64,000 bases of DNA, from sequence record PP496438.1. One strand, given 5' to 3'. The notes under the pieces are model-generated. The model had not been told where the DNA came from. It searched no databases and worked only from the letters and a program-made list of their open reading frames with translations. A program made the position numbers and the translations under genes. Below are positions 3,421 through 18,949 of this stretch, one piece after another; position 1 is the first letter of the stretch; each line of letters begins with the position of its first letter.

Positions 3421-5235
3421 ATGATCCGAATGAACAACCGCATGCGGTTATCAGACAAGAATGGTCGCATGACGACCATCGCGTCACCGCAGAGCATGAG
3501 TGGCAGCATGGGTGCAGGGGGTCACCCCATGACTCGCGCCATGGGTGGCAACGCGTCCACCCGAGACAGCCTGCTCGACGGCATCCTGAAGCTCGACCCG
3601 GATGTCATGCGTCAGATCTATATGGATATGTACCTGTTCGATCCGACCATCGGCGGCGCCACTGACTTGCTGGCCCAGAGCCCGTGGTCGGACTACGATC
3701 TAGTAGACGCTGAGCCGGATCAACTGGACATCTTCTACCGGTCGATGGAACTGCTGAACTACCGAGAGCTGATGCCGGAGTTCACCATCGACTACCTGAC
3801 GCTGGGCGCCGCTGTAGGTACGCCGCTGTACAGCGTGTCGGAAAAGGCATTCACCGACATCATCCCGCACTCCATCGCCAGTATTCAGGTTCAGGAAGTT
3901 CCCCTGTATTCCCAAGACCCTGTGCTGACGCTGCTGGTGCCGGAAGAAATGCGCACGTTCGCGACCAGTCAAGACCCGTACGTGGTCAAGATGCGGCAGC
4001 GCATGACACCGAAGATGGTGGAAGCGTTCCGAGCGCAGGAGGTTGCACTTGATCCGGTGACCACGCTGTACGTACCCCGCACTTCGTTCTCGACAGTGCA
4101 GCAAGGCGTATCGCTGTACACCCGCTTGATCCCGATCTACTTGCTGGAACGTCTTCTGTACCGTGGCACGTTGACCGAGGCTACTCGCCGCCAGCGCTCT
4201 ACGTTGCACATTCAAGCTGGTGACGATCTGTGGAACCCGGACGACAATGAGCTGAACAGTCTGGTGCAGCTGTTCCTGCAAGCCGAGCAAGATCCAGTGT
4301 CGGCCATCGTCGCTACCCAGATGAACGTGCAGACTCAGGAGATTCGAGCTGCCGGTGACTTCTGGAAGTGGACGGATAACCTGGAGCAGTTCAACGACAT
4401 CAAGCTGCGAGGCATGGGGATCAACGAATCCTACATGTCAGGTGATGTGACCTACGACAACCTGAGTACCAGTGTGACCATGTTCCAAGAGCAGCAGGAC
4501 TCGCTCCGGGAAATGATGGTACGCAAGACGCTGTACACCAAGGTGTTCCCGGTCCTGTCGATCACCCACGACTTCCGCCGCAAGGAAGAGTCGCGGCATG
4601 CTCGCCGCGAGATGGCTACGGCCAAGGCTGCGCAGAAGCGTACCCTGAACGATTCGTTCGCGTTCCAGGTGAATGACAAAGCATCGCTGGTCATCCCCAA
4701 GGTGGTATGGCACAAGAAGCTGCGTTCCATGTACACCGAAGGTTCGTTCGATATCCTTGACAAGCTAGCGGAAGCAGGTCTACCGGTTACCCTCCGGGCG
4801 TGGGCTGCTGCTGGGGGTTACGACCTGGACAGCGCTATGCAGGCCATGGCCGACGATGCCAAACTTCGGAAACAGGTGTCAGACTTCAAAGCCGAGAACG
4901 GTATCGATGCCGGTACGGAAAACGACTTCAACCTCGACGGGGATACCGAGCTGTCGATGGTCAGGTCCGCATCCGCATTGCTGGATAAGGCAATGGGTGG
5001 CCGGGGTATGAAGCCACTGGGTCTGCTGGGCCGTGAGTTCAGCGAGGCGGATTCCGAAGTGGTACGCCATGATCACTCTGGCAAACGCAAGTGGGTTCCT
5101 GACCAGCACCGTGCCAAGCGGGAGGAGAACGATAAGGCGATGAAGGCGTTGAAGCAGGCCTCTGATCCGGACTTCCGTGCCAAGACGATTGCCGCCGTTA
5201 ACCGTAGACAAGGCGCGAGAAAGACTCGCGGCTGA
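3421..5235 (+). CDS. Portal protein (putative)
   Basis: 604 aa, follows terminase; YLFDPTIGGATDLLA segment resembles portal N-terminal helix; basic tail. Confidence 0.7.
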   Translation: MIRMNNRMRLSDKNGRMTTIASPQSMSGSMGAGGHPMTRAMGGNASTRDSLLDGILKLDPDVMRQIYMDMYLFDPTIGGATDLLAQSPWSDYDLVDAEPDQLDIFYRSMELLNYRELMPEFTIDYLTLGAAVGTPLYSVSEKAFTDIIPHSIASIQVQEVPLYSQDPVLTLLVPEEMRTFATSQDPYVVKMRQRMTPKMVEAFRAQEVALDPVTTLYVPRTSFSTVQQGVSLYTRLIPIYLLERLLYRGTLTEATRRQRSTLHIQAGDDLWNPDDNELNSLVQLFLQAEQDPVSAIVATQMNVQTQEIRAAGDFWKWTDNLEQFNDIKLRGMGINESYMSGDVTYDNLSTSVTMFQEQQDSLREMMVRKTLYTKVFPVLSITHDFRRKEESRHARREMATAKAAQKRTLNDSFAFQVNDKASLVIPKVVWHKKLRSMYTEGSFDILDKLAEAGLPVTLRAWAAAGGYDLDSAMQAMADDAKLRKQVSDFKAENGIDAGTENDFNLDGDTELSMVRSASALLDKAMGGRGMKPLGLLGREFSEADSEVVRHDHSGKRKWVPDQHRAKREENDKAMKALKQASDPDFRAKTIAAVNRRQGARKTRG

Positions 5236-5260: not shown

Positions 5261-6688
5261 ATGAAAAACAATCCACAAGTCACGCGCCTTTCCGCCTTGG
5301 CTGCTGCTGGTATCAACGTCAAGTCAGGTTCTCCGGTTGATGTCGTGCACCAGCACACTCGCACTCTGGGCAACACCATCGAGAAGCTGAGCCAGCCGCG
5401 TCAGTGGGCCATTGCTCACCTGATGAACGAAGCGGCCGACCTGCTGGTTGTAGAAACTGGCAGCCTTCAAGACGACTACATCGACTACTTCAAAGGTGCA
5501 CTGGAGAAGTTCGGTGTGTCCTCCCCAGCGGAACTGACCCAAGAGAAGGCTTCCGAGTTCTTCAACTGGATCAGCGCCAACTGGAAGAAGGGAGAAGGCC
5601 CTAAAGCCGAAGCCAGCGTCGAAACTGCCAGCCAGTTCTCCTTCGTCAAAGTCAGCCAGAACGGTAACACCTACCGACTGGAAGCCTCGGACACCGGCAA
5701 CTTCAAATCCGTCATGATCTGGAAGGGTGGCATGTGGACGAAGCCAGGTCCGGACGAAGCGTTCAAGGAGAAAGAGCCGCACCGCATGCTGGGTGCCCTG
5801 CGCACGCCCAACGGTGCAGAACTGGCTACCCTCAACCTGCCGGAAACCCCAGTGGCGAGCATGGAAGAGATGGCCGAGCTGTTCGGCGCCATGGGTATCG
5901 AAGAGAGCGAGATCCGTCGCTTCTACGGCGGTGGTCCAGAGTGGAATGATCGCAGCGTCTACGATGGCAACATCCCGAGCGTATCCCCGGCCAATCTGGG
6001 TGTGAACCCAACTTACGCCTACACCGACATGCACCCGCTGCGTGCCTACGAGGCGGAAGACACCATCCGTATCAATGGTCTGGACGCCACGTTGCAATCC
6101 ATTGACAACGGACAGGCTGTGTTCACGGTTGACGGCGTAGATACAACCACGGTGCCGCTGGACAACATCGTGGTCGCTGAAGGTGAAGCCTCGGTAGTAG
6201 CCACCGCCATGGTATCTCATCGCGTACTGGTTACCGCTGGTCACGAAGACCTGACTCAGTACAAGTCGCTGCGTCACGACTTCGAGACTGTTACCGCGAA
6301 CCACCAAGAGCTGTCGCAAGTCAAGGTCGGCCCAGCGCTGCAAACCCTCGCCAAGGCGGGTAACCGTCGCGCTCTGGTACTGGCCCACGCCGGTGTGCAG
6401 CGTATCAACGAAGGTCATGCGCTGCTCAAAGCCTCCATCGGCTACGGCAAGGAAGCGGCGACCGCCAGTGTCATCACAGAGCTGGCCGATCTGAACAACC
6501 TGTGTGGCAAGGATCAAGTGTCGGCACAAGACGTGATCGACTCCGCGCCAGTGGTCACTCATCTGAAGCAGGGTGAGTTCAAGGCCGACATGCCGGACGT
6601 GGTTGACTCTTCAGACTTCGAGCTGAACGATCCGCAAGCCGAACAGGCGTCCACGCGCAAGAGCCGCTTCCCAAGCCGCAAGCGCTAA
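5261..6688 (+). CDS. Head-associated (scaffold/internal) protein, putative
   Basis: Start moved to ATG 5261 (GGAG SD; avoids portal overlap); lies between portal and protease; several ETA/ATA motifs. Confidence 0.55.
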   Translation: MKNNPQVTRLSALAAAGINVKSGSPVDVVHQHTRTLGNTIEKLSQPRQWAIAHLMNEAADLLVVETGSLQDDYIDYFKGALEKFGVSSPAELTQEKASEFFNWISANWKKGEGPKAEASVETASQFSFVKVSQNGNTYRLEASDTGNFKSVMIWKGGMWTKPGPDEAFKEKEPHRMLGALRTPNGAELATLNLPETPVASMEEMAELFGAMGIEESEIRRFYGGGPEWNDRSVYDGNIPSVSPANLGVNPTYAYTDMHPLRAYEAEDTIRINGLDATLQSIDNGQAVFTVDGVDTTTVPLDNIVVAEGEASVVATAMVSHRVLVTAGHEDLTQYKSLRHDFETVTANHQELSQVKVGPALQTLAKAGNRRALVLAHAGVQRINEGHALLKASIGYGKEAATASVITELADLNNLCGKDQVSAQDVIDSAPVVTHLKQGEFKADMPDVVDSSDFELNDPQAEQASTRKSRFPSRKR

Positions 6689-6718: not shown

Positions 6719-6734
6719 CATCAGGAACTTGACT

Positions 6735-8771
6735 ATGACAATCAAGAGTGCTACATTTGCGGTGGCTGAATCGCAAGCTCAAGGCCTAGCCAACTCCATG
6801 GGATGGCCGGGTGAGGTAATGGACAACGGTGACGGCACTGTCACTCTGTCGCCACCCGACGCATGGGACGATGAAGAGAATCCCGGCAAGGTGGCCGCGT
6901 CCAAGCTGACCGGCAACAAGGACTGTCACGTCTTCGCCAGTATGGCGGTGCCCAGTGAAGGTGAGTGGATGGCTGTAGTCATTCAAGGTACACCGGCGCT
7001 GGTACTCATCGACCAAGGGTCTGGTGAAGGCTGGTTGACCCTTCAGGCCCCTGCGGACTTCGATGTTCCGGAGAGCGTGCTGATTCCTTTCCAACAACGC
7101 TTGACCCAAACGGAAACTGCTTCAATGGACCTTGAACAAGACGTAGAACTGGCAGCAGGGAAGAAAAAATCGGAAGTGGACCAACTTATCGAACTGCGAC
7201 AGGAATACGATAAGCTTCAATTCTCAAAGTCGAAATTGAGCGTACACGGTAAGAACCCTACCAGCTCTCGTATCATCTCAGCGAAGAAAGGGTTGATAGA
7301 ACGGGAGAAGGAATTCAAGGACAAGTTGAAGAAATTGGTCCCGTCGGGTCGTATTCCTACCATGGAGAGTTTGCAGAATCGTAAGATGCGGGAATCGGGA
7401 ATTAAACCTCCGACCAAAGCTGAGAAGGATTCGGCCAGTGAGCGTCGGATGTTGAAGAGTGAAAAAGACAGGCAGACGAGAGTAGCTACTACAGTAAAGA
7501 AACACGGAGTAACTGAATCGGAAGCCAATACCTTGCACCGGGGCAAATACCCTAAGTCCTATTATAAGGATGAACGGGACCTGGATGAGATCAGTCATAA
7601 GTTGAAAAATCCTAGGCTTACGGATGAGCAAGAAGCTAAGTTGGAGAAAGAGTTGAAAGACTTGCGCACGAAGTTCAAGGAAAAGAAGAAGAAATACGAT
7701 GCCGTCCTCAAGGAAGGGCGGGAGGAATCTTCGGTTCAGCCGGATACCCGTACGCAGGTTCTGGCTAACGTCTCCAGCGACCCGGCCACTCCTGCGTATC
7801 AGGAAGCATCTATCACGGGAGTTACACCAGAAGGCCACATCTCAGTAGCATTCGCTGACGGCGATATCGGTGTGTACCAAGGTAAGTTCGACCCTGCTGG
7901 TCTGATGCCAATCGCGGAAGCGGCAGGCGTTGAAGTTGCCAGCTTCAGACACCACACCATGGTTCTGGCCAACGTTGGCACTGCGGCAGCACCTGAATAC
8001 GCCGAAGCAGAGGTGATTGGTTCCACCGAGGAAGGCCATCTGGAAGTCGCGTTCGCCGATGGTGACGTGGGCATCTACCGTTCCTTGTTCCACCCTACCG
8101 GTATCTTGCCGCTGGGTGTGACTGCCGAGACGGCCAGTGTGCTCATCGAGGTGGCCGCACGTACGGCAATGACCCCGGAGCAGAAGCTCAAGCGTGCACA
8201 GGACCTGCTCAAGCTGCGTACGCTGCACGACAAGTACGAGACCAACACCGACGCCCTGAAAGGCAAGAAAGGTCCGGAGAACAAAGCCAAGCGGGACAAG
8301 AACAACGAGGACAAGGCCAAGCTCCGTGCCAAGCTGGACAAGATGGGTGTCACATCCCTGCCGAGCAAAGCTCACCTGCAGCGTACCATCAAGCAGCACA
8401 GCGATCTGCCGACCCGTATGCGTGCATCGGACAAGAAGCCTGCTGCTAAGGTACCAACGAATAAGGCAGCACGGGACGCGGCCAAGAAGAAGTATGCGCC
8501 TGCTAAAGAGGACAAAGGATTAGACATGCGGATTAAGGCTCCGGGGTATGCTGAAAGGAATTTCGGCCCTGCTGCCATGAAACGAAAAGAGGAAAGAAAG
8601 TCTTTGCCCAAAGCTACTCAGGACAAGATCAAGAAGTTGGAAGCAAAGATAGAAGAGACGCTTACGGACATCCATAAGGGTTCCATCAGTAAAAGGGACG
8701 TTCAGACTGCCCGCGACCAAGTTAAGGCTTGGAAAGAGCAAGTCAAAGAACTTTCTACCCCGGCTAAGTAA
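6735..8771 (+). CDS. Lys-rich mosaic internal head protein with two Tudor/SH3-like repeats
   Basis: Repeats VLANV..PxY...GH.xVAFADGD.GxY at about 7755-7913 and 7959-8118; Lys-rich, AT-richer blocks; ATG 6735 with AGGA SD. Confidence 0.6.
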   Translation: MTIKSATFAVAESQAQGLANSMGWPGEVMDNGDGTVTLSPPDAWDDEENPGKVAASKLTGNKDCHVFASMAVPSEGEWMAVVIQGTPALVLIDQGSGEGWLTLQAPADFDVPESVLIPFQQRLTQTETASMDLEQDVELAAGKKKSEVDQLIELRQEYDKLQFSKSKLSVHGKNPTSSRIISAKKGLIEREKEFKDKLKKLVPSGRIPTMESLQNRKMRESGIKPPTKAEKDSASERRMLKSEKDRQTRVATTVKKHGVTESEANTLHRGKYPKSYYKDERDLDEISHKLKNPRLTDEQEAKLEKELKDLRTKFKEKKKKYDAVLKEGREESSVQPDTRTQVLANVSSDPATPAYQEASITGVTPEGHISVAFADGDIGVYQGKFDPAGLMPIAEAAGVEVASFRHHTMVLANVGTAAAPEYAEAEVIGSTEEGHLEVAFADGDVGIYRSLFHPTGILPLGVTAETASVLIEVAARTAMTPEQKLKRAQDLLKLRTLHDKYETNTDALKGKKGPENKAKRDKNNEDKAKLRAKLDKMGVTSLPSKAHLQRTIKQHSDLPTRMRASDKKPAAKVPTNKAARDAAKKKYAPAKEDKGLDMRIKAPGYAERNFGPAAMKRKEERKSLPKATQDKIKKLEAKIEETLTDIHKGSISKRDVQTARDQVKAWKEQVKELSTPAK

Positions 8772-8793
8772 CCACACCTGACTGGAGCATGAC

Positions 8794-9552
8794 ATGAACG
8801 TGTTTGAAATGATTGCCCAGCAGAACGCCGCGATGAAACCCATCGACGTGCACAAGCTGGTTAAAGGCAAGGATGTAGATCCAAAGCTCAAGGAGATGAC
8901 CACGGCCAAAGTCGGTATGCCCGGCTTGGCCCAGGCCATTACGTTCGCGGAGTGGTTGCCGTTCGCGGCCAAGACGTATCACTGCTCGCCGGATCCGAAG
9001 GATTACATTCTGGTCCCGAACATCGTGATGCCGTCGGAGATCCCCAACCGGAATGGCGTGGGCTTCCCCTTGCAGCAACTGGTACGCTTCAATCCTGAGA
9101 CTGGTTGCCAAGGCTTCCGTACGGCAGTCGGCAAGGGTACGTACGCGGACCACCAGAACAACACCGTCGCCCCGCTGGCGAAAGGCGTGATCGTGGATTC
9201 GTTCATGCGCCCGCTGGAAGGCTTCAAGGGCGGCGTGTGGAAGTTGCTGTTCCTCTTGGCGTACGACCGGTCCAAAGACCAAGCGCTCACCAACGCCATC
9301 TTGGCAGGCACTCGTACCAACTACAGCATGGGCGCGTACCTGACCAAGTACACGTGCTCGATCTGTGGCCGGGACCGGGGCCAGTGTGTGCACTTGAGCG
9401 CGCAGAAAGGTTCGGTGAACTTCCGCAAGGTAGGGAACCAGCTGGCGTACTCGCAGGCATACGAACCAATTTTCTTCGAGACGTCCTCGGTAGAAGATCC
9501 GGCTTTCGTATCGTCGATCACCGGCGCTGATCACCTGCTTATCACTCGGTAA
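8794..9552 (+). CDS. Prohead maturation protease (HK97/assemblin-like serine protease)
   Basis: NRNG, YADHQNN (His), YSMG (Ser) and ETSSVEDPAF motifs; CSIC..C..H; head module position. Confidence 0.75.
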   Translation: MNVFEMIAQQNAAMKPIDVHKLVKGKDVDPKLKEMTTAKVGMPGLAQAITFAEWLPFAAKTYHCSPDPKDYILVPNIVMPSEIPNRNGVGFPLQQLVRFNPETGCQGFRTAVGKGTYADHQNNTVAPLAKGVIVDSFMRPLEGFKGGVWKLLFLLAYDRSKDQALTNAILAGTRTNYSMGAYLTKYTCSICGRDRGQCVHLSAQKGSVNFRKVGNQLAYSQAYEPIFFETSSVEDPAFVSSITGADHLLITR

Positions 9553-9584
9553 GCAGGAACTCCGTAACAAGTAGAGGTAACATC

Positions 9585-9743
9585 ATGGGTATCACTACCA
9601 TTCTCCTGATCGTGTTGATAGTTCTGCTCGTCTGCGGCTTGCCCGTGTTCCCGTACTCCACAGGTTGGGGTTACGGTCCATCTGGGCTGATCACGGTGAT
9701 CGTCGTGATCCTGCTGATCCTCGTCTTGACCGGACGAATGTGA
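9585..9743 (+). CDS. DUF3309-family small membrane protein (absent from ORF track)
   Basis: Hand translation MGITTILLIVLIVLLVCGLPVFPYSTGWGYGPSGLITVIVVILLILVLTGRM; GAGG SD; WGYGPSG between two TM segments is the family signature. Confidence 0.8.
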   Translation: MGITTILLIVLIVLLVCGLPVFPYSTGWGYGPSGLITVIVVILLILVLTGRM

Positions 9744-9748
9744 CAACC

Positions 9749-9782
9749 GCCCGCTCTGGCAAACGCTGGGGCGGGCTTTTTC
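9749..9782 (+). terminator. Rho-independent terminator
   Basis: GCCCGCTCTGGC-AAAC-GCTGGGGCGGGC followed by T run. Confidence 0.8.
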
Positions 9783-9829
9783 GTATCTGCTAATTACAAA
9801 ACATGGATAAATAAATTGGAAGATGGGAC

Positions 9830-11041
9830 ATGATCAAATTCGTGGAGATATCCGCACCTAGTTCGGACTTCGCCAAGACCCTCAAGAAAGGCATACGGGT
9901 CGTGGTCAACATGGGATCTACTAAGGAACCGTCCTATTGGATGGCGACTGTAGCAAAGAACAATGCAGCGAAGGGCACCGTCAACCTGAACTTCGATGAT
10001 GGAGACGTGGCCGAGTACAAAGCTATCAAGTCCAAGGTGGGTATTGTCGGGATCGGAGTTGCCAAAGTCCGCAAGACTGAAATCCCATTGTCTCAGGTTG
10101 GCAAGTGGCTTACTAGTGAGGAAACTACATCACCGTCCTCCTACCTGTCTGACCCTGTCCAGAAGTTTTTAGCTAAGTGGGTAGACTCCTTTGATAAGGA
10201 CGGGGCCAATCCTTCAAATAAGAAATATTTGTTAAAGACAATGAAGGACTTATTACCTAGCATACCCGAAGAGTATAGAAAACATACGGGTATCCTTTTC
10301 CGAGGGGTTAGGCTACCAGTAGAAGTTGTAACTTCTATCCTCGCGGGTTCTCGACTAAAATTTAAAGATGAATTCATTTCGTATTCCTCCGATAGAGATG
10401 CTGCTGTAAAATTTGCGGCCTATGTAGACTATGATAAAGGAAAAGAACAAATAGGGATAGTAATAAAAGAGGATAGTAACTCTGTTGCGGTTAATATCTT
10501 TGAGGTATGGGATAACATCTCGTCAAAGTACAAAGATATACATTCTCAATCATTTGTAGATGAGGAAAAAGAAGTAGTACTTCAAAACTCCAACCTGGGA
10601 CTAGCTACTTCACAGATTGATATGCTACTTATATCTAAAGGTAAAATAAAATCATTAGGGAAGCAGGAGCCTCCCGGCTGGAATAAGTTTCTTAAATCAA
10701 GTGGAATACTTAAAGACATATATTGCATTCCCAACACTAAAGATAATATTAAGGGTGTACAAGAAGTCCTTAGTTTGAACACGACAACTCTTATGAATCC
10801 GCAGAAGATGTCGGCTATACTAACCAAACTAGGATTTCCTAAATCTAACGGGGAAACATTTAGGACGTTGTACCTTCCTGACCTAGAGCTTTCTATAAAA
10901 GCGTCTATGGTTCCTCAAGGAATACTGTTCGAGACTGGTAAGGGCTGGCGATTTGCCAAGTTTGAGTATAAACAGGTAGGGATAGCAGAGGATGAAGCAT
11001 CCGCTATCAATTTATTTAATATGATAGCCAAACAAAGATAA
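9830..11041 (+). CDS. N-terminal Tudor/SH3-like module fused to an R-S-ExE ADP-ribosyltransferase domain
   Basis: ILFRG (Arg), FISYSSD (SxS), DEEKEVVL (ExE); residues 13-94 are 56/82 identical to a segment of the 11128 protein; AT-rich after about 10140. Confidence 0.7.
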   Translation: MIKFVEISAPSSDFAKTLKKGIRVVVNMGSTKEPSYWMATVAKNNAAKGTVNLNFDDGDVAEYKAIKSKVGIVGIGVAKVRKTEIPLSQVGKWLTSEETTSPSSYLSDPVQKFLAKWVDSFDKDGANPSNKKYLLKTMKDLLPSIPEEYRKHTGILFRGVRLPVEVVTSILAGSRLKFKDEFISYSSDRDAAVKFAAYVDYDKGKEQIGIVIKEDSNSVAVNIFEVWDNISSKYKDIHSQSFVDEEKEVVLQNSNLGLATSQIDMLLISKGKIKSLGKQEPPGWNKFLKSSGILKDIYCIPNTKDNIKGVQEVLSLNTTTLMNPQKMSAILTKLGFPKSNGETFRTLYLPDLELSIKASMVPQGILFETGKGWRFAKFEYKQVGIAEDEASAINLFNMIAKQR

Positions 11042-11044
11042 TAG

Positions 11045-11074
11045 TTGCACGGGCTGTTTTGGGTGTGCTATAAT
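11045..11074 (+). promoter_or_regulatory. Sigma70-type promoter
   Basis: TTGCAC-N18-TATAAT with extended -10 TG. Confidence 0.75.
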
Positions 11075-11127
11075 AGCACCATGGCACTATTCAAGCGCCG
11101 CCCACTGTCCCAATGAGGAAAGCAACC

Positions 11128-12837
11128 ATGACCAGATTGACCCTAGCAACCGTCAACGCCGAGATCGCAAAGTCCGGTGGCAAAGAAACTCTGGTCAAGG
11201 GTAAGGGCTACTTCTACTGGATAGGTGGCCGTGCCGACGCCGATCCTCAAATCTGGACTTCCATTTACGTTGCTGCGCTAAACCAGATGACGCTGGCCCA
11301 GTGGCTGGAAGACTGGAAGCGCAATGACGACCAATACAACAAACCTACTCCCGACAAGGAAACCCGCAAAATGGCTATCAGACACGTTCAGACCCTCGCA
11401 GCTCCTGCTCGTCCAAAACCACCTACCGGTGCAAAAGCAGGTGGGGGTAAGTCAATCGAAGAGAGAATCGAATGGAATGAAGGTAGGATCAAGGAGGCTA
11501 CTGCGGAACTGAAAGCCACCAAAGATCCGAAAGCTATTGACAAGATCAAAAAGCAGATTGATATCTACAAGGGTAACATCGCCGGTTTCAAGAAAAGGCT
11601 GAACCCGGAAAAGAAACCAGCACCGGCCAAAGGTCCTAGCGGTGCTGCTTCCAAGAAGCGTACCACTGCTGCCCATGCACAGGAGACTGCGTCCCCGGCT
11701 ACCGACTTCGCCAAGTCGTTGAAGAAGGGCGTTCGTGTACTGGTCAATCTCGGCAACACCAAAGAGCCGTCCTACTTCCTCGGCGCCATTACCAAGAACA
11801 ACGCCAGCAAGGGTTCGGTCAACGTGCTGTTCGATGACGGCGACGTTGCAGAGGTCCGTGCGATCAAATCCAAGGTCGGCATCGTGGGCATCGCCATCGA
11901 CAAGGTACGCAAGTCGGAAGTGCCAGCTGATCAGATCAGCAAGTGGCTGGCTGGTGCGGCACCAGCGACCAAGACCCCCGCCAAGCCTAACGAGCTGAAG
12001 AAGTCGCTGGATATCCTCGGTCCGAAGAAGGACTCCAAGGTGCCCTCCAAGCCCGTGAGTAAGGACACCGAAGTACAAGATATGTATGGTCAGCTGGTGG
12101 ACAAGATGACAGCTATCTTGAAAGCCAAGAAGAAGTACAGCCCAGCGTTGGATAAGGCAATTGATGACTACGCCAAGCTGCCTACGTCAACCAGCAAGGC
12201 CAAGAAGATCGAAGCTTTGCAGGCAGCTATCGGACTCGCTGATTCTCAGCTGGGTTCATCTAAACCATTCAGCCCGGCGGAAGCCCGGAAGGTCATCGGT
12301 GCTATCCCCGGCTGGAAGGCGTCCAGCGTGAAGAACAAAGCGTCGGCCACGTTCACCAAAGATTACCCGAACGGTGTCACTGCCACTGCTTATGTCTTCC
12401 CGCAGTACGTGTCGTTTGAATACCCACAAGGCGAGAACGATCACGTCAGCGACTTGTCCAAGATCGCAGCTTACATCAAGCAGATCGACGATGATCAAGC
12501 AGTAACACCCGACCAAGGAAAAGCACTGGATGCTCTGGCCAAAGCGTTGAAGGGTTGGCCGAACAAGGTCCTCCCACGGGATGCTGACGAAGACAACTTC
12601 CTGCTGCGCGGATTTGAAGATGATGATCTTCCGGCTGATGTGGGGCCAACTGCTGACGCCATCGAAGCACATGCAATCTCGATCTTCAAGAAGATGAAAA
12701 GTGTTGACAACTTCAAGAAGAGCAAGATGTACCACGGCGACAACACATACTCCTTCTCGGCTGGCGGCACCGTGGGCTACGTGTACTTCGATGAAGATGG
12801 CGTCGGCATGGTCCGGGCAACACCGTTCGAAGAGTAA
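11128..12837 (+). CDS. Lys/Ala-rich multidomain protein carrying the shared Tudor/SH3-like module
   Basis: ATG 11128 follows ACTGTCCCAATGAGG leader; module at 11704-11949. Confidence 0.65.
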   Translation: MTRLTLATVNAEIAKSGGKETLVKGKGYFYWIGGRADADPQIWTSIYVAALNQMTLAQWLEDWKRNDDQYNKPTPDKETRKMAIRHVQTLAAPARPKPPTGAKAGGGKSIEERIEWNEGRIKEATAELKATKDPKAIDKIKKQIDIYKGNIAGFKKRLNPEKKPAPAKGPSGAASKKRTTAAHAQETASPATDFAKSLKKGVRVLVNLGNTKEPSYFLGAITKNNASKGSVNVLFDDGDVAEVRAIKSKVGIVGIAIDKVRKSEVPADQISKWLAGAAPATKTPAKPNELKKSLDILGPKKDSKVPSKPVSKDTEVQDMYGQLVDKMTAILKAKKKYSPALDKAIDDYAKLPTSTSKAKKIEALQAAIGLADSQLGSSKPFSPAEARKVIGAIPGWKASSVKNKASATFTKDYPNGVTATAYVFPQYVSFEYPQGENDHVSDLSKIAAYIKQIDDDQAVTPDQGKALDALAKALKGWPNKVLPRDADEDNFLLRGFEDDDLPADVGPTADAIEAHAISIFKKMKSVDNFKKSKMYHGDNTYSFSAGGTVGYVYFDEDGVGMVRATPFEE

Positions 12838-17746: not shown

Positions 17747-18949
17747 ATGACCACCAAGACAATGCTGTTGAACAACGTCACCGCCATCGATGTAGGCTTC
17801 CTGACCGCCCAAGGCGTGTTCGGGGCCAGCGTACGCCCTTCGTTCCTTATCACCGGCGAGATGTCCGAGGACGAACAGGTGGTTGTGGATTTCTCCACGA
17901 TCAAGAAGTCCATCAAGGAACTGATCGACCACAAAGAGCTGGGCATCGATCACAAGACCATCGTCATCGGTCCAGCGTTTCCAAAACCTGAAGATGACGA
18001 TAACTTCACCGTCACTATGGGCGGTCCTGTGGGTGGTTCCGTTCGCATGACTGCCCCGGAAGACGCTTTCGTGTTCTTGTCCGAACGTTGCCCCAACGCA
18101 CTCAGCGAAGACTGGAACACCAAGGGTAAGCTGCTGTCCGATTGCGTTGTAGTAGATCGTCACGGCGGGCTGGTATCCCCAGAGCGCTTCGTCATTCCGT
18201 TGGTGCAAGAACTGCTGAGCCGCGAACTGCCAAAGCTCTTCCCCACGTTGACCGACATCAAGGTGTTCTACAGCAAAGACGTCACAGCGCCGTTGCAGCC
18301 TAGCCACATCCGTGTGGGATCCCTGTTCAAAGGCGAAGATCACAATCCGATGATGGACACGCTGGTGGAAGACAACATCCGCCTCACCTACTCCCACGGT
18401 CTGCCCCGCTCCACTAGCTGGGGCTGCCAGAACATCCTGCACGGCCACGTCAGCGTCGTGACACTGGCTATGCCTCATTCCCGCTCCGACCATACACAGG
18501 CTATCCTGCTGGACATTCGCCATGATCTGGCGGGTAAGTATCTGGTGGCCGAGCGTGACGTAATCCCAGCGGATGATGAACCGTCTGTACTGGACGACGA
18601 AGATGCCGTATTGGAAGGCACCGACGAAGATCAGGACGCTAACTCCGACGATCTGATGGACGCACATACCATGTCTGAAGACGATGCGCCGGACGAAGTT
18701 GACGACGTAGCTATCCAAGGTACGAACATCGGGTTCGAGTCCATGTCTCGCGGCTCGTTCAGCCTGTTCCTGCCACACGGCAGCACCCAGATCAAAGTGA
18801 TGCCGACGGACACCACCGTTGAAAACATCGCCCAGTACATCTGGGACACTCACGTCCAGCCCGCCATCGAAGCCTACGAACTGACCGACGTATCCATGTA
18901 CGTCTCGGAAGGCTTGGACAAAGGCGCATTCATCCGTCAGCAGGTATGA
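17747..18949 (+). CDS. Two-domain QueD/PTPS-like (6-carboxytetrahydropterin synthase-like) protein
   Basis: VVDFSTIKK..IDHK; YSHGL..CQNILHGH; TTVENIA; acidic insertion. Confidence 0.75.
   Translation: MTTKTMLLNNVTAIDVGFLTAQGVFGASVRPSFLITGEMSEDEQVVVDFSTIKKSIKELIDHKELGIDHKTIVIGPAFPKPEDDDNFTVTMGGPVGGSVRMTAPEDAFVFLSERCPNALSEDWNTKGKLLSDCVVVDRHGGLVSPERFVIPLVQELLSRELPKLFPTLTDIKVFYSKDVTAPLQPSHIRVGSLFKGEDHNPMMDTLVEDNIRLTYSHGLPRSTSWGCQNILHGHVSVVTLAMPHSRSDHTQAILLDIRHDLAGKYLVAERDVIPADDEPSVLDDEDAVLEGTDEDQDANSDDLMDAHTMSEDDAPDEVDDVAIQGTNIGFESMSRGSFSLFLPHGSTQIKVMPTDTTVENIAQYIWDTHVQPAIEAYELTDVSMYVSEGLDKGAFIRQQV

Follow-up and report, generated by a model that had tools for sequence, protein, structure and literature searches.

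Several groups of bacteriophages are known, or predicted, to send proteins into the host together with their DNA. The internal proteins of phage T4 are taken up into the prohead core, the prohead protease trims them after a Glu, and they stay with the DNA and are injected along with it (PMC9503650, PMC5512222, PMC10052503); T4 Alt is an ADP-ribosyltransferase (ART) of the R-S-E type, and related phages are polymorphic at the internal-protein loci (PMC9503650, PMC5512222). In phiKZ and SPN3US families of head-internal paralogues are cut at X-X-E by a T4-like prohead protease, the SPN3US enzyme cutting after A-X-E with Ser preferred at P1' and removing propeptides of 20-254 residues (PMC10052503). 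The MuF toxins of temperate phages couple a head-associated N-terminal domain to variable C-terminal toxins, including ARTs and peptidases, that are predicted to be packaged and injected (PMC5576092), and polyvalent proteins string 2-15 effector domains along one giant polypeptide for which delivery with the DNA is also predicted (PMC5512222). ART, metallopeptidase (MPTase) and SNF2 domains are typical of both MuF fusions and polyvalent proteins (PMC5512222, PMC9503650). Polymorphic packaged effectors are, then, already established, and what is new at the locus described here, in Pseudomonas phage vB_PpuM-SKa-4, is a putative Tudor-like adaptor shared by several proteins, a probable protease motif and a tractable natural system of presence and absence.

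The window, i.e. the whole stretch of 64,000 bases analysed, corresponds at 100% identity to bases 1-64000 of the SKa-4 genome (PP496438.1). SKa-4 is a lytic jumbo myovirus of 202 kb that grows on P. putida KT2440/PaW85 and is a member of genus cluster G3 in the Estonian CEPEST collection. Three proteins encoded on the plus strand, gp6 (678 residues, 6735-8771), gp9 (gene 9830-11041) and gp10 (569 residues, 11128-12837), carry one or two copies of the same small module; the local order is terminase, portal, gp5, gp6, prohead protease, a 52-residue open reading frame (ORF), gp9 and gp10, and every gene of the module locus is annotated ‘hypothetical protein’ in the record. We favour the reading, at somewhat less than an even chance, that gp6, gp9 and gp10 form a family of jumbo-myovirus internal head proteins, each with a protease site, a Tudor-like adaptor and an exchangeable cargo. 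The shared unit of such a family would span about 75-90 residues and comprise a Glu-small-small site (here E/TAS, the slash marking the candidate cut), a five-strand barrel and a basic helix.

The gp9 module, with its short leader (MIKFVE/ISAP) and C-terminal helix, is encoded at 9830-10111, and the gp10 module, with the candidate protease site before it, at 11683-11949. The 56 identities that the sequence-only reading had counted by hand between the 82-residue segments at 9866-10111 and 11704-11949 are confirmed by an exact recount (56/82), and over a wider stretch the two modules are identical at 58/89 positions (65%; BLASTP E 1e-37), which rules out chance similarity. At the DNA level they are only 65.5% identical, and the codon differences, 28 synonymous and 31 non-synonymous, rule out a recent duplication and point instead to an old one, so that the sequences mark the gp9 and gp10 modules as old paralogues under selection. 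The two tandem repeats of gp6 (residues 338-400 and 401-465; 7740-7937 and 7938-8126), which had been aligned to the same pattern, are true homologues of the module by two profiles. Of all six-frame ORFs in the 64 kb, a hidden Markov model (HMM) made from the gp9 and gp10 copies finds only gp6, at E 5e-6, while a foreign-only profile of 80 metagenomic and Vibrio-phage copies, from which every P. putida-phage sequence was excluded, finds gp6 at E 6.6e-14 and the single repeats at 1.3e-4 and 3.3e-7, respectively, and also finds the gp10 module. The gp6 repeats consist of the barrel core alone, without the C-terminal helix, and are acidic (pI 4.2-4.7), whereas the gp9 and gp10 copies and their linkers are basic.

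Beyond the module the flanking cargo of the three proteins is mutually unrelated, in agreement with the earlier view. In gp6 an acidic N-terminal part (residues 1-127) is followed by the sequence ETAS (nt 7113-7124), a Lys-rich block of pI 9.6, the two module cores, a second ETAS immediately after repeat 2 (nt 8127-8138) and a further Lys-rich block of pI 10.1, a layout that makes it a candidate scaffold-like or core internal head protein. In gp10 an N-terminal part of 186 residues (a phrog_9154 domain and a Lys-rich block) leads to ETAS (nt 11683-11694), the module, a Lys-rich linker and an acidic C-terminal domain, and gp9 has an ART-like cargo (10130-10639) behind its module and a small domain at its C-terminus (10820-11038). 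The placing of the module in head-region proteins stands for these three; the module is not confined to them, for a scan of the remaining genome found three further module proteins outside the window: SKa4_00129, which adjoins the baseplate hub gene, SKa4_00142, which adjoins a NUDIX gene, and SKa4_00149, in which the module is followed by an acidic tail and a zinc ribbon. SKa-4 thus has 7 modules in 6 proteins, and the three paralogues may, on less evidence, belong to the same internal head protein family.

The proposal that the module is a Tudor/SH3-like barrel can be accepted on the strength of structure prediction, Foldseek matches and Pfam Tudor matches among relatives. An AlphaFold2 (AF2) model of gp9 residues 1-270, computed from a 17-row alignment (single-sequence AF2 of full gp9 gave a predicted local distance difference test score, pLDDT, of 34), places five strands at residues 23-27, 36-45, 50-55, 60-64 and 71-75, with pLDDT 77-93 over residues 12-78, i.e. 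the five-strand antiparallel barrel of about 55-60 residues that characterises the Tudor/SH3-like superfamily. Searched with Foldseek, the modelled module matches the Tudor domains of SMN (template-modelling score, TM, 0.59), PHF1 (0.62), TDRD3 (0.67), RDM15 (0.61) and BAHCC1 with probability 0.98-1.0 and E 0.07-0.16, TM by target ranging over 0.34-0.67 when BAHCC1 is included. The window copies match the BAHCC1-like Tudor family PF21744 at E 0.033 and 0.016, with scores of 14.6 and 15.6 that lie below its cut-off of 28. Among 59 module proteins Pfam detects Tudor_5 in 10 (best 8.5e-7), the BAHCC1-like Tudor in 5 and Tudor_3 in 2, and among the families listed for the window and these 59 proteins neither Pfam nor PHROGs has one of its own for the unit. 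In the alignments P-x-Y and F-x-D-G-D are kept, while other aromatic positions are variable and are lost in the gp6 repeats. The module shares with the eukaryotic Tudors of SMN, PHF1, TDRD3 and BAHCC1 the five-strand barrel and an ‘F-D-D-G-D’ strand-turn signature; it differs in that the aromatic methyl-lysine/arginine cage is not evidently kept, in its setting in a phage head gene block, and in a phage-specific addition, the conserved basic C-terminal helix RKSEIPxxxIxKWL, usually followed by a Lys-rich linker. The word ‘Tudor’ does not occur in PMC5512222 or PMC9503650.

Comparison with eight sister phages, 91-98% identical where they align to 6729-12837 and covering 56-100% of it, reveals how the cargo varies. 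The gp9 cassette is an indel of 1250 bp (9791-11039, from blastn breakpoints), carried by SKa-4, Illi-2, Amme-1 and Pori-4 (4/9 G3 phages) and missing from Aura, Lauda, Peetri, KoPa-5 and Voja-6 (5/9). By alignment with phage Aura it sits between a strong intrinsic terminator (9749-9776; a 12-bp stem with 9 G-C pairs and a T run), which follows the 52-residue ORF and closes the portal-protease unit, and the upstream region of gp10. There an extended -10-like box, TGCTATAAT, stands at 11066-11074, so that the cassette is inserted between terminator and box; the box occurs once in the whole genome, which rejects it as a recurrent promoter type and makes it uninformative on expression timing. The gp9 cargo has a GC content of 0.385 (0.358 at third codon positions, GC3), far below the 0.507 of its own module (GC3 0.649) and the 0.55 of the genome, and gp9 therefore looks like a foreign AT-rich enzyme domain fused to a resident module and recently acquired. 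The modules of gp6 and gp10 are conserved islands whose flanks are deleted or replaced in sister phages, on both sides in gp10; in gp6 the Lys-rich blocks are replaced or deleted and the repeats kept, the deletion in Pori-4 and KoPa-5 beginning right after the first ETAS and stopping at repeat 1. The C-terminal 75 residues of gp9 reappear in an insert of Pori-4 gp10 (28/76 identical, 37%; E 5e-6).

Variation of this kind would also be expected if gp6 and gp10 were scaffold, core or DNA-condensing structural proteins with fast-drifting Lys-rich parts, the barrel served to oligomerise them and gp9 were an unrelated moron with a copied module, with no effector delivered at all. The differences between sister phages do fall mostly in Lys-rich, low-complexity stretches, gp6 is reminiscent of a core protein, charged and helical, that is cut into pieces, and gp9, lying between a terminator and the gene that follows, has the look of a moron-like cassette. 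We nonetheless hold this structural alternative to be unlikely, since elsewhere the module carries clear enzymes in many independent fusions (Pfam ART, SprT-like and SNF2 domains, and the gp9-type R-S-E domain in at least nine clusters) and the enzyme-bearing paralogues often stand in tandem arrays with differing C-termini.

The evidence for these fusions comes from a profile search of 1.84 billion representative proteins, in which about 55 clusters of metagenomic and Vibrio-phage origin have a full-length module. The sequence-only reading had suggested building an HMM of the module and listing the domains fused to it, and this uncovers varied cargo. In most relatives an N-terminal module precedes a single cargo in a protein of 114-712 residues, and only two (P0086 and P0092) exceed 1300. 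By Pfam, P0101 among the foreign members carries an ADP-ribosyltransferase (E 1.3e-19), and there are two SprT-like metallopeptidases, one SNF2 helicase and one BRCT domain, a repertoire in line with that of known head-packaged effectors; inspection by eye adds leucine-rich repeats and proteins in which two to four modules follow in tandem. One metagenomic contig has three tandem module genes (ART-like, unknown and HExxH peptidase) beside a tail sheath gene, and another has five within 8 kb, with differing C-termini, beside a head-tail connector gene. The Vibrio coralliilyticus phages GR11A and GR7B each encode three to four module proteins, and in protease and major head protein they are 53-54% identical to SKa-4, whose major head protein has its nearest relatives in GR7B/GR11A and then in RSL1, Lu11, PaBG and Erwinia Y3-like phages. 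With one module on unrelated, swappable cargo both in sister phages and in about 55 foreign clusters, the earlier suggestion of polymorphic effector swapping is borne out as to the pattern, though not as a new concept.

A tblastn search of 50,697 phage genomes with two different module seeds gave no genomes beyond the nine P. putida G3 phages and the two Vibrio coralliilyticus phages; a pattern scan of IMG/VR with the module alignment gave 162 pattern matches and no confirmed relative; and word-indexed homologue searches returned sister phages only, the family alignment adding just P0017 and P0032 among the candidates listed. The module profile also matches giant proteins of 1000-7600 residues with up to 19 tandem ‘GDRVEARYK...DGD’ repeats (P0010-P0014, P0018, P0107 and others). 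These might have been false positives due to the DGD repeat, but inspection showed the repeats to be tandem Tudor-like ones; the proteins are probably eukaryotic and were left out of the phage-family statistics. Away from the window, at PP496438.1 112898-129277 on the minus strand, lies a block that combines a head-tail connector gene, genes for module proteins, ligase and NUDIX genes and one for a giant SNF2-like helicase; SKa-4, Vibrio phage GR11A and the metagenomic contig L012 have it in common, the helicase measuring 1917 residues in SKa-4 and 2529, with an intein, in L012.

The cargo of gp9 had been called an ART domain, and this is sustained by residue motifs, family alignment and fold rather than by any database assignment; we regard it as an ART with a confidence of about two in three. 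Residues 101-270 group with nine foreign cargos in a 10-member alignment (at least nine foreign clusters), in which no polar residues are invariant except those at R158, S184 and E248 of gp9. These three lie in the family-level motifs F-R-G, S-x-S and E-x-E, in gp9 LFRGV (R158, nt 10301), S184-Y-S186 (nt 10379) and E246-K-E248 (nt 10565-10573), and so make up the R-S-E signature of Alt/VIP2-like ARTs. In the AF2 model the Arg is on strand 154-163, the Ser on strand 182-186, which leads into a helix, and the Glu where strand 248-252 begins, an order like that of ARTs, where Arg lies on strand 1, Ser-x-Ser on strand 2 and (Q/E)-x-E before strand 5; pLDDT is only 63-87 in the cargo and below 50 at residues 229-246. 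Foldseek matches the modelled cargo to the Vis ART toxin (4y1w, 4xzj, 4xzk) with probability 0.99-1.0, TM 0.39-0.42 and E 0.013-0.03, and to KptA/Tpt1 at E 0.015-0.05, and standalone proteins of about 165 residues in jumbo phages phiN3 and PTm1 match it as well. In all, the part of gp9 attached to the module is a region of 300 residues unmatched in Pfam and PHROGs.

The strongest evidence for a head location lies in the sequence ETAS. Among the 79 proteins annotated in the window it is present once in gp5, twice in gp6 and once in gp10, four copies in all, and the whole genome (six-frame ORFs of at least 60 residues, 202 kb) has six, the additional two being in the major head protein and in an unannotated antisense frame, so that gp5, gp6, gp10 and the major head protein are the only annotated SKa-4 proteins to have it. 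In the major head protein (PP496438.1 139506-140594, minus strand, outside the window) QVE/TAS stands at residue 67, which we take to be the point at which T4-like prohead proteases remove the capsid propeptide; this protein is 100% identical in 8/9 G3 phages despite the strong variation of the head-internal genes. By chance 0.05-0.07 ETAS sequences would be expected in the four proteins, and a total of five was not reached in any of 20000 shuffles. In position the sites coincide with boundaries between domains: one precedes the gp10 module, another comes after gp6 repeat 2 and a third before the gp6 Lys-rich block, and in Pori-4 and KoPa-5 the first gp6 ETAS stands directly before repeat 1. 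Related sites are VE/ISAP at gp9 residue 6, aligned with QE/TASP of gp10, GVE/VAS at the end of gp6 repeat 1, between the two repeats (nt 7926-7943), and EIE/TSAL before the SKa4_00129 module. Further afield, E[TAS][ASTG] is found within 22 residues upstream of 29% of 70 distinct foreign modules, mostly 5-7 residues before the module, as against 4.3% (sd 2.4) in control windows, and the major head protein of the Vibrio phages shows E/A at the aligned position, their modules being preceded by EE/A.

The enzyme that would cut these sites is encoded between gp6 and gp9, at 8794-9552. It matches phrog_18299 at E 5.9e-62, and its homologues are labelled prohead core protease in Erwinia, Dickeya and RSL1-type jumbo phages. 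The sites make gp5, gp6 and gp10 probable substrates of this neighbouring protease and, as such, probable proteins of the prohead interior. The protease has a sequence of the same kind, FFE/TSS, at residues 229-233 of its 252 (9476-9490), 23 residues from the C-terminus, a candidate self-cleavage site by analogy with the C-terminal propeptide of SPN3US gp245. The 475-residue gp5 (5261-6688; phrog_28651), with ETAS at residue 121 (nt 5621-5632), has no module. Its segment ‘SPAEL..FFNWISANWKKGEGP..VE/TAS’ (residues 95-124, 5543-5632; the match extends over 95-138) is homologous to the stretch preceding the module in P0060, GR11A_00025 and GR7B_00089, and may be a shared propeptide-like element, here on a module-less protein. 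In sister phages insertions of 280-780 bp at 5606-5618 give gp5 a length of 475-730 residues and make it a second hypervariable spot.

On the reading we favour, precursors would enter the prohead core during assembly, held there by the barrel as a protein-protein adaptor whose likeliest partner is the abundant, module-bearing and Lys-rich gp6, or otherwise the scaffold or the shell. The protease would then trim propeptides at E/TAS-type sites of the same kind as in the major head protein, leaving mature, module-first proteins that would stay with the DNA, their Lys-rich linkers against it once packaged, and be ejected with it at infection. The part C-terminal to the module would be exchangeable, and the gp9 cargo a functional analogue of T4 Alt. 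The sequence-only reading had taken the module for an address tag of the capsid or DNA core; a location inside the head is probable for gp6 and gp10 from their ETAS sites, and the DNA-core part is weakened by the acidity of the gp6 modules, which, set beside the basic gp9 and gp10 copies, disfavours the barrel as a general DNA binder and favours a protein-protein role. That the cargo proteins might co-assemble with the two-module core protein gp6 is an attractive idea. Carried further, the barrel might be a self-sufficient, transferable tag for capsid loading and ejection, unrelated to the T4 capsid-targeting sequence (CTS) and to MuF and acting through gp6 co-assembly, such that any protein placed behind ‘E/TAS + module’ would be packed and delivered and the tandem arrays would be enzyme arsenals; this we entertain only as a tentative and rather doubtful extension.

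The sites also bear on the view that the module proteins never enter the virion, being intracellular factors of host takeover or DNA metabolism whose Tudor-like domain binds DNA, RNA polymerase or a host complex and whose position among head genes is incidental. Orthologues in SKa-4, the Vibrio phages and L012 do have DNA ligase, NUDIX, RNA ligase and giant SNF2-like helicase genes in the same block, an extended -10-like box is present at gp10, and both the modules and the linkers of gp9 and gp10 are basic. This is difficult to reconcile, however, with an ETAS motif that is common, besides the module proteins, only to the major head protein and gp5, with the enrichment of Glu-small-small sites just upstream of foreign modules, with the head-tail connector in the very same block and the tail sheath or connector genes adjoining the arrays, and with the acidic gp6 modules, and we judge an intracellular role to be quite improbable.

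A head-internal fate with protease processing could also be had if the address were the N-terminal leader or propeptide with its cleavage site, in the manner of T4 and SPN3US, and the barrel acted only after ejection, targeting the cargo to some component of the host, for instance RNA polymerase, the nucleoid or a modified protein. T4 propeptides do direct proteins into the prohead core (PMC10052503), and foreign members begin with short hydrophobic leaders of 10-25 residues that are conserved. Cleavage would leave the module on the mature protein and not on the discarded part; moreover, Tudor-like domains are typical partner-binding adaptors, and ART, SNF2, SprT and BRCT cargo acts on nucleic-acid-associated targets. 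Since gp5 and the major head protein have the ETAS site and no module, the module is not needed for head entry, which speaks for a leader address and against the adaptor reading. Yet the gp9 leader has only 6 residues, those of gp5, gp6 and gp10 are mutually unrelated, gp6 has two modules and no recognisable enzyme, and the module is the sole element common to all members; we consider a leader address conceivable, if on the whole unlikely.

Further points weigh against internal head proteins with a Tudor-like adaptor. The ETAS motif was spotted post hoc, and independent tests of it are confined to its occurrence in the major head protein, found later (chance about 0.01), and its enrichment before foreign modules; many foreign members have leaders without any Glu. 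The terminator separates gp9 and gp10 from the portal-protease unit. The three SKa-4 paralogues and all Vibrio-phage members are sited away from the protease gene, beside NUDIX, ligase, giant-helicase or baseplate hub genes, and the conserved block, with its connector, module proteins, ligase/NUDIX genes and giant helicase, tells against a purely head-centred view. On the structural side every fold match in the PDB has an E-value above 0.001, gp9 has no sequence match in Pfam, PHROGs or the PDB (as a single sequence or, for the PDB, as a cargo-family profile, which gave noise), and an hhalign comparison of its cargo with the Pfam-verified ART P0101 aligns the R and S motifs at a weak E of 0.04, so that the ART is likely and yet not a database fact. 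The literature on the CEPEST collection, RexAB defence and PaBG holds no virion, cleavage or timing data for these genes, and no virion proteomics for the Vibrio relatives was found.

Set against the systems described at the outset, the family of internal head proteins that we favour is closest in outline to the T4 internal proteins and Alt, with which it would share core loading, trimming after Glu, polymorphic loci and an ART-like cargo; no similarity to T4 proteins was found, gp9 having no match in Pfam or PHROGs. The T4 CTS is a short leader that is cleaved off, whereas the element shared in SKa-4 is a folded barrel of about 75 residues that would remain on the mature protein. As in MuF toxins, variable C-terminal enzyme domains follow a constant N-terminal domain. 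A MuF domain, which is of the SPP1 gp7-like type, is absent among the 25 of 28 matched Pfam families listed for the 59 module proteins and among the matches of the window proteins, there is no immunity-like gene beside gp9, and the hosts of the module are lytic jumbo myoviruses, in contrast to the temperate phages that encode MuF. The repertoire of ART, zincin-like MPTase/SprT and SNF2 domains recalls polyvalent proteins, from which the family differs in having one cargo per small protein, in gene arrays that share one adaptor, in place of a giant polypeptide. From phiKZ and SPN3US it is set apart as a separate lineage with a Tudor-like barrel as the shared element, and no similarity to phiKZ proteins was found.

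Of the other genes in the window, that for the portal protein (3421-5235; phrog_16240, E 6.7e-132, and annotated as such) opens the head gene block and is encoded, like gp5 and the protease, on the plus strand. Genes like QueD, QueC and QueE and for GTP cyclohydrolase lie at 17747-18949 and, outside the window, at 159393-161772 and 193833-197492 of the genome, and they suggest that the phage DNA has a 7-deazaguanine modification.

The proteins that travel in the head decide the first minutes of infection, in which the host is taken over and its defences evaded, and outside T4, phiKZ/SPN3US, P1 and N4 it is difficult to identify them by sequence. Should the proposed assembly prove wrong, a domain family that had no annotation and a probable protease recognition motif for the G3 phages are documented nonetheless. 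With KT2440/PaW85 as host and nine natural variants with and without gp9, the loading and ejection of folded domains become approachable. If the reading is true, the protease site together with the barrel would provide a sequence handle for listing packaged effectors in poorly known jumbo phages and in their many uncultured relatives from marine and freshwater habitats, the hypervariability of one locus among P. putida phages that are otherwise nearly identical would be explained, and a role in prokaryotic viruses would be added to the Tudor fold.

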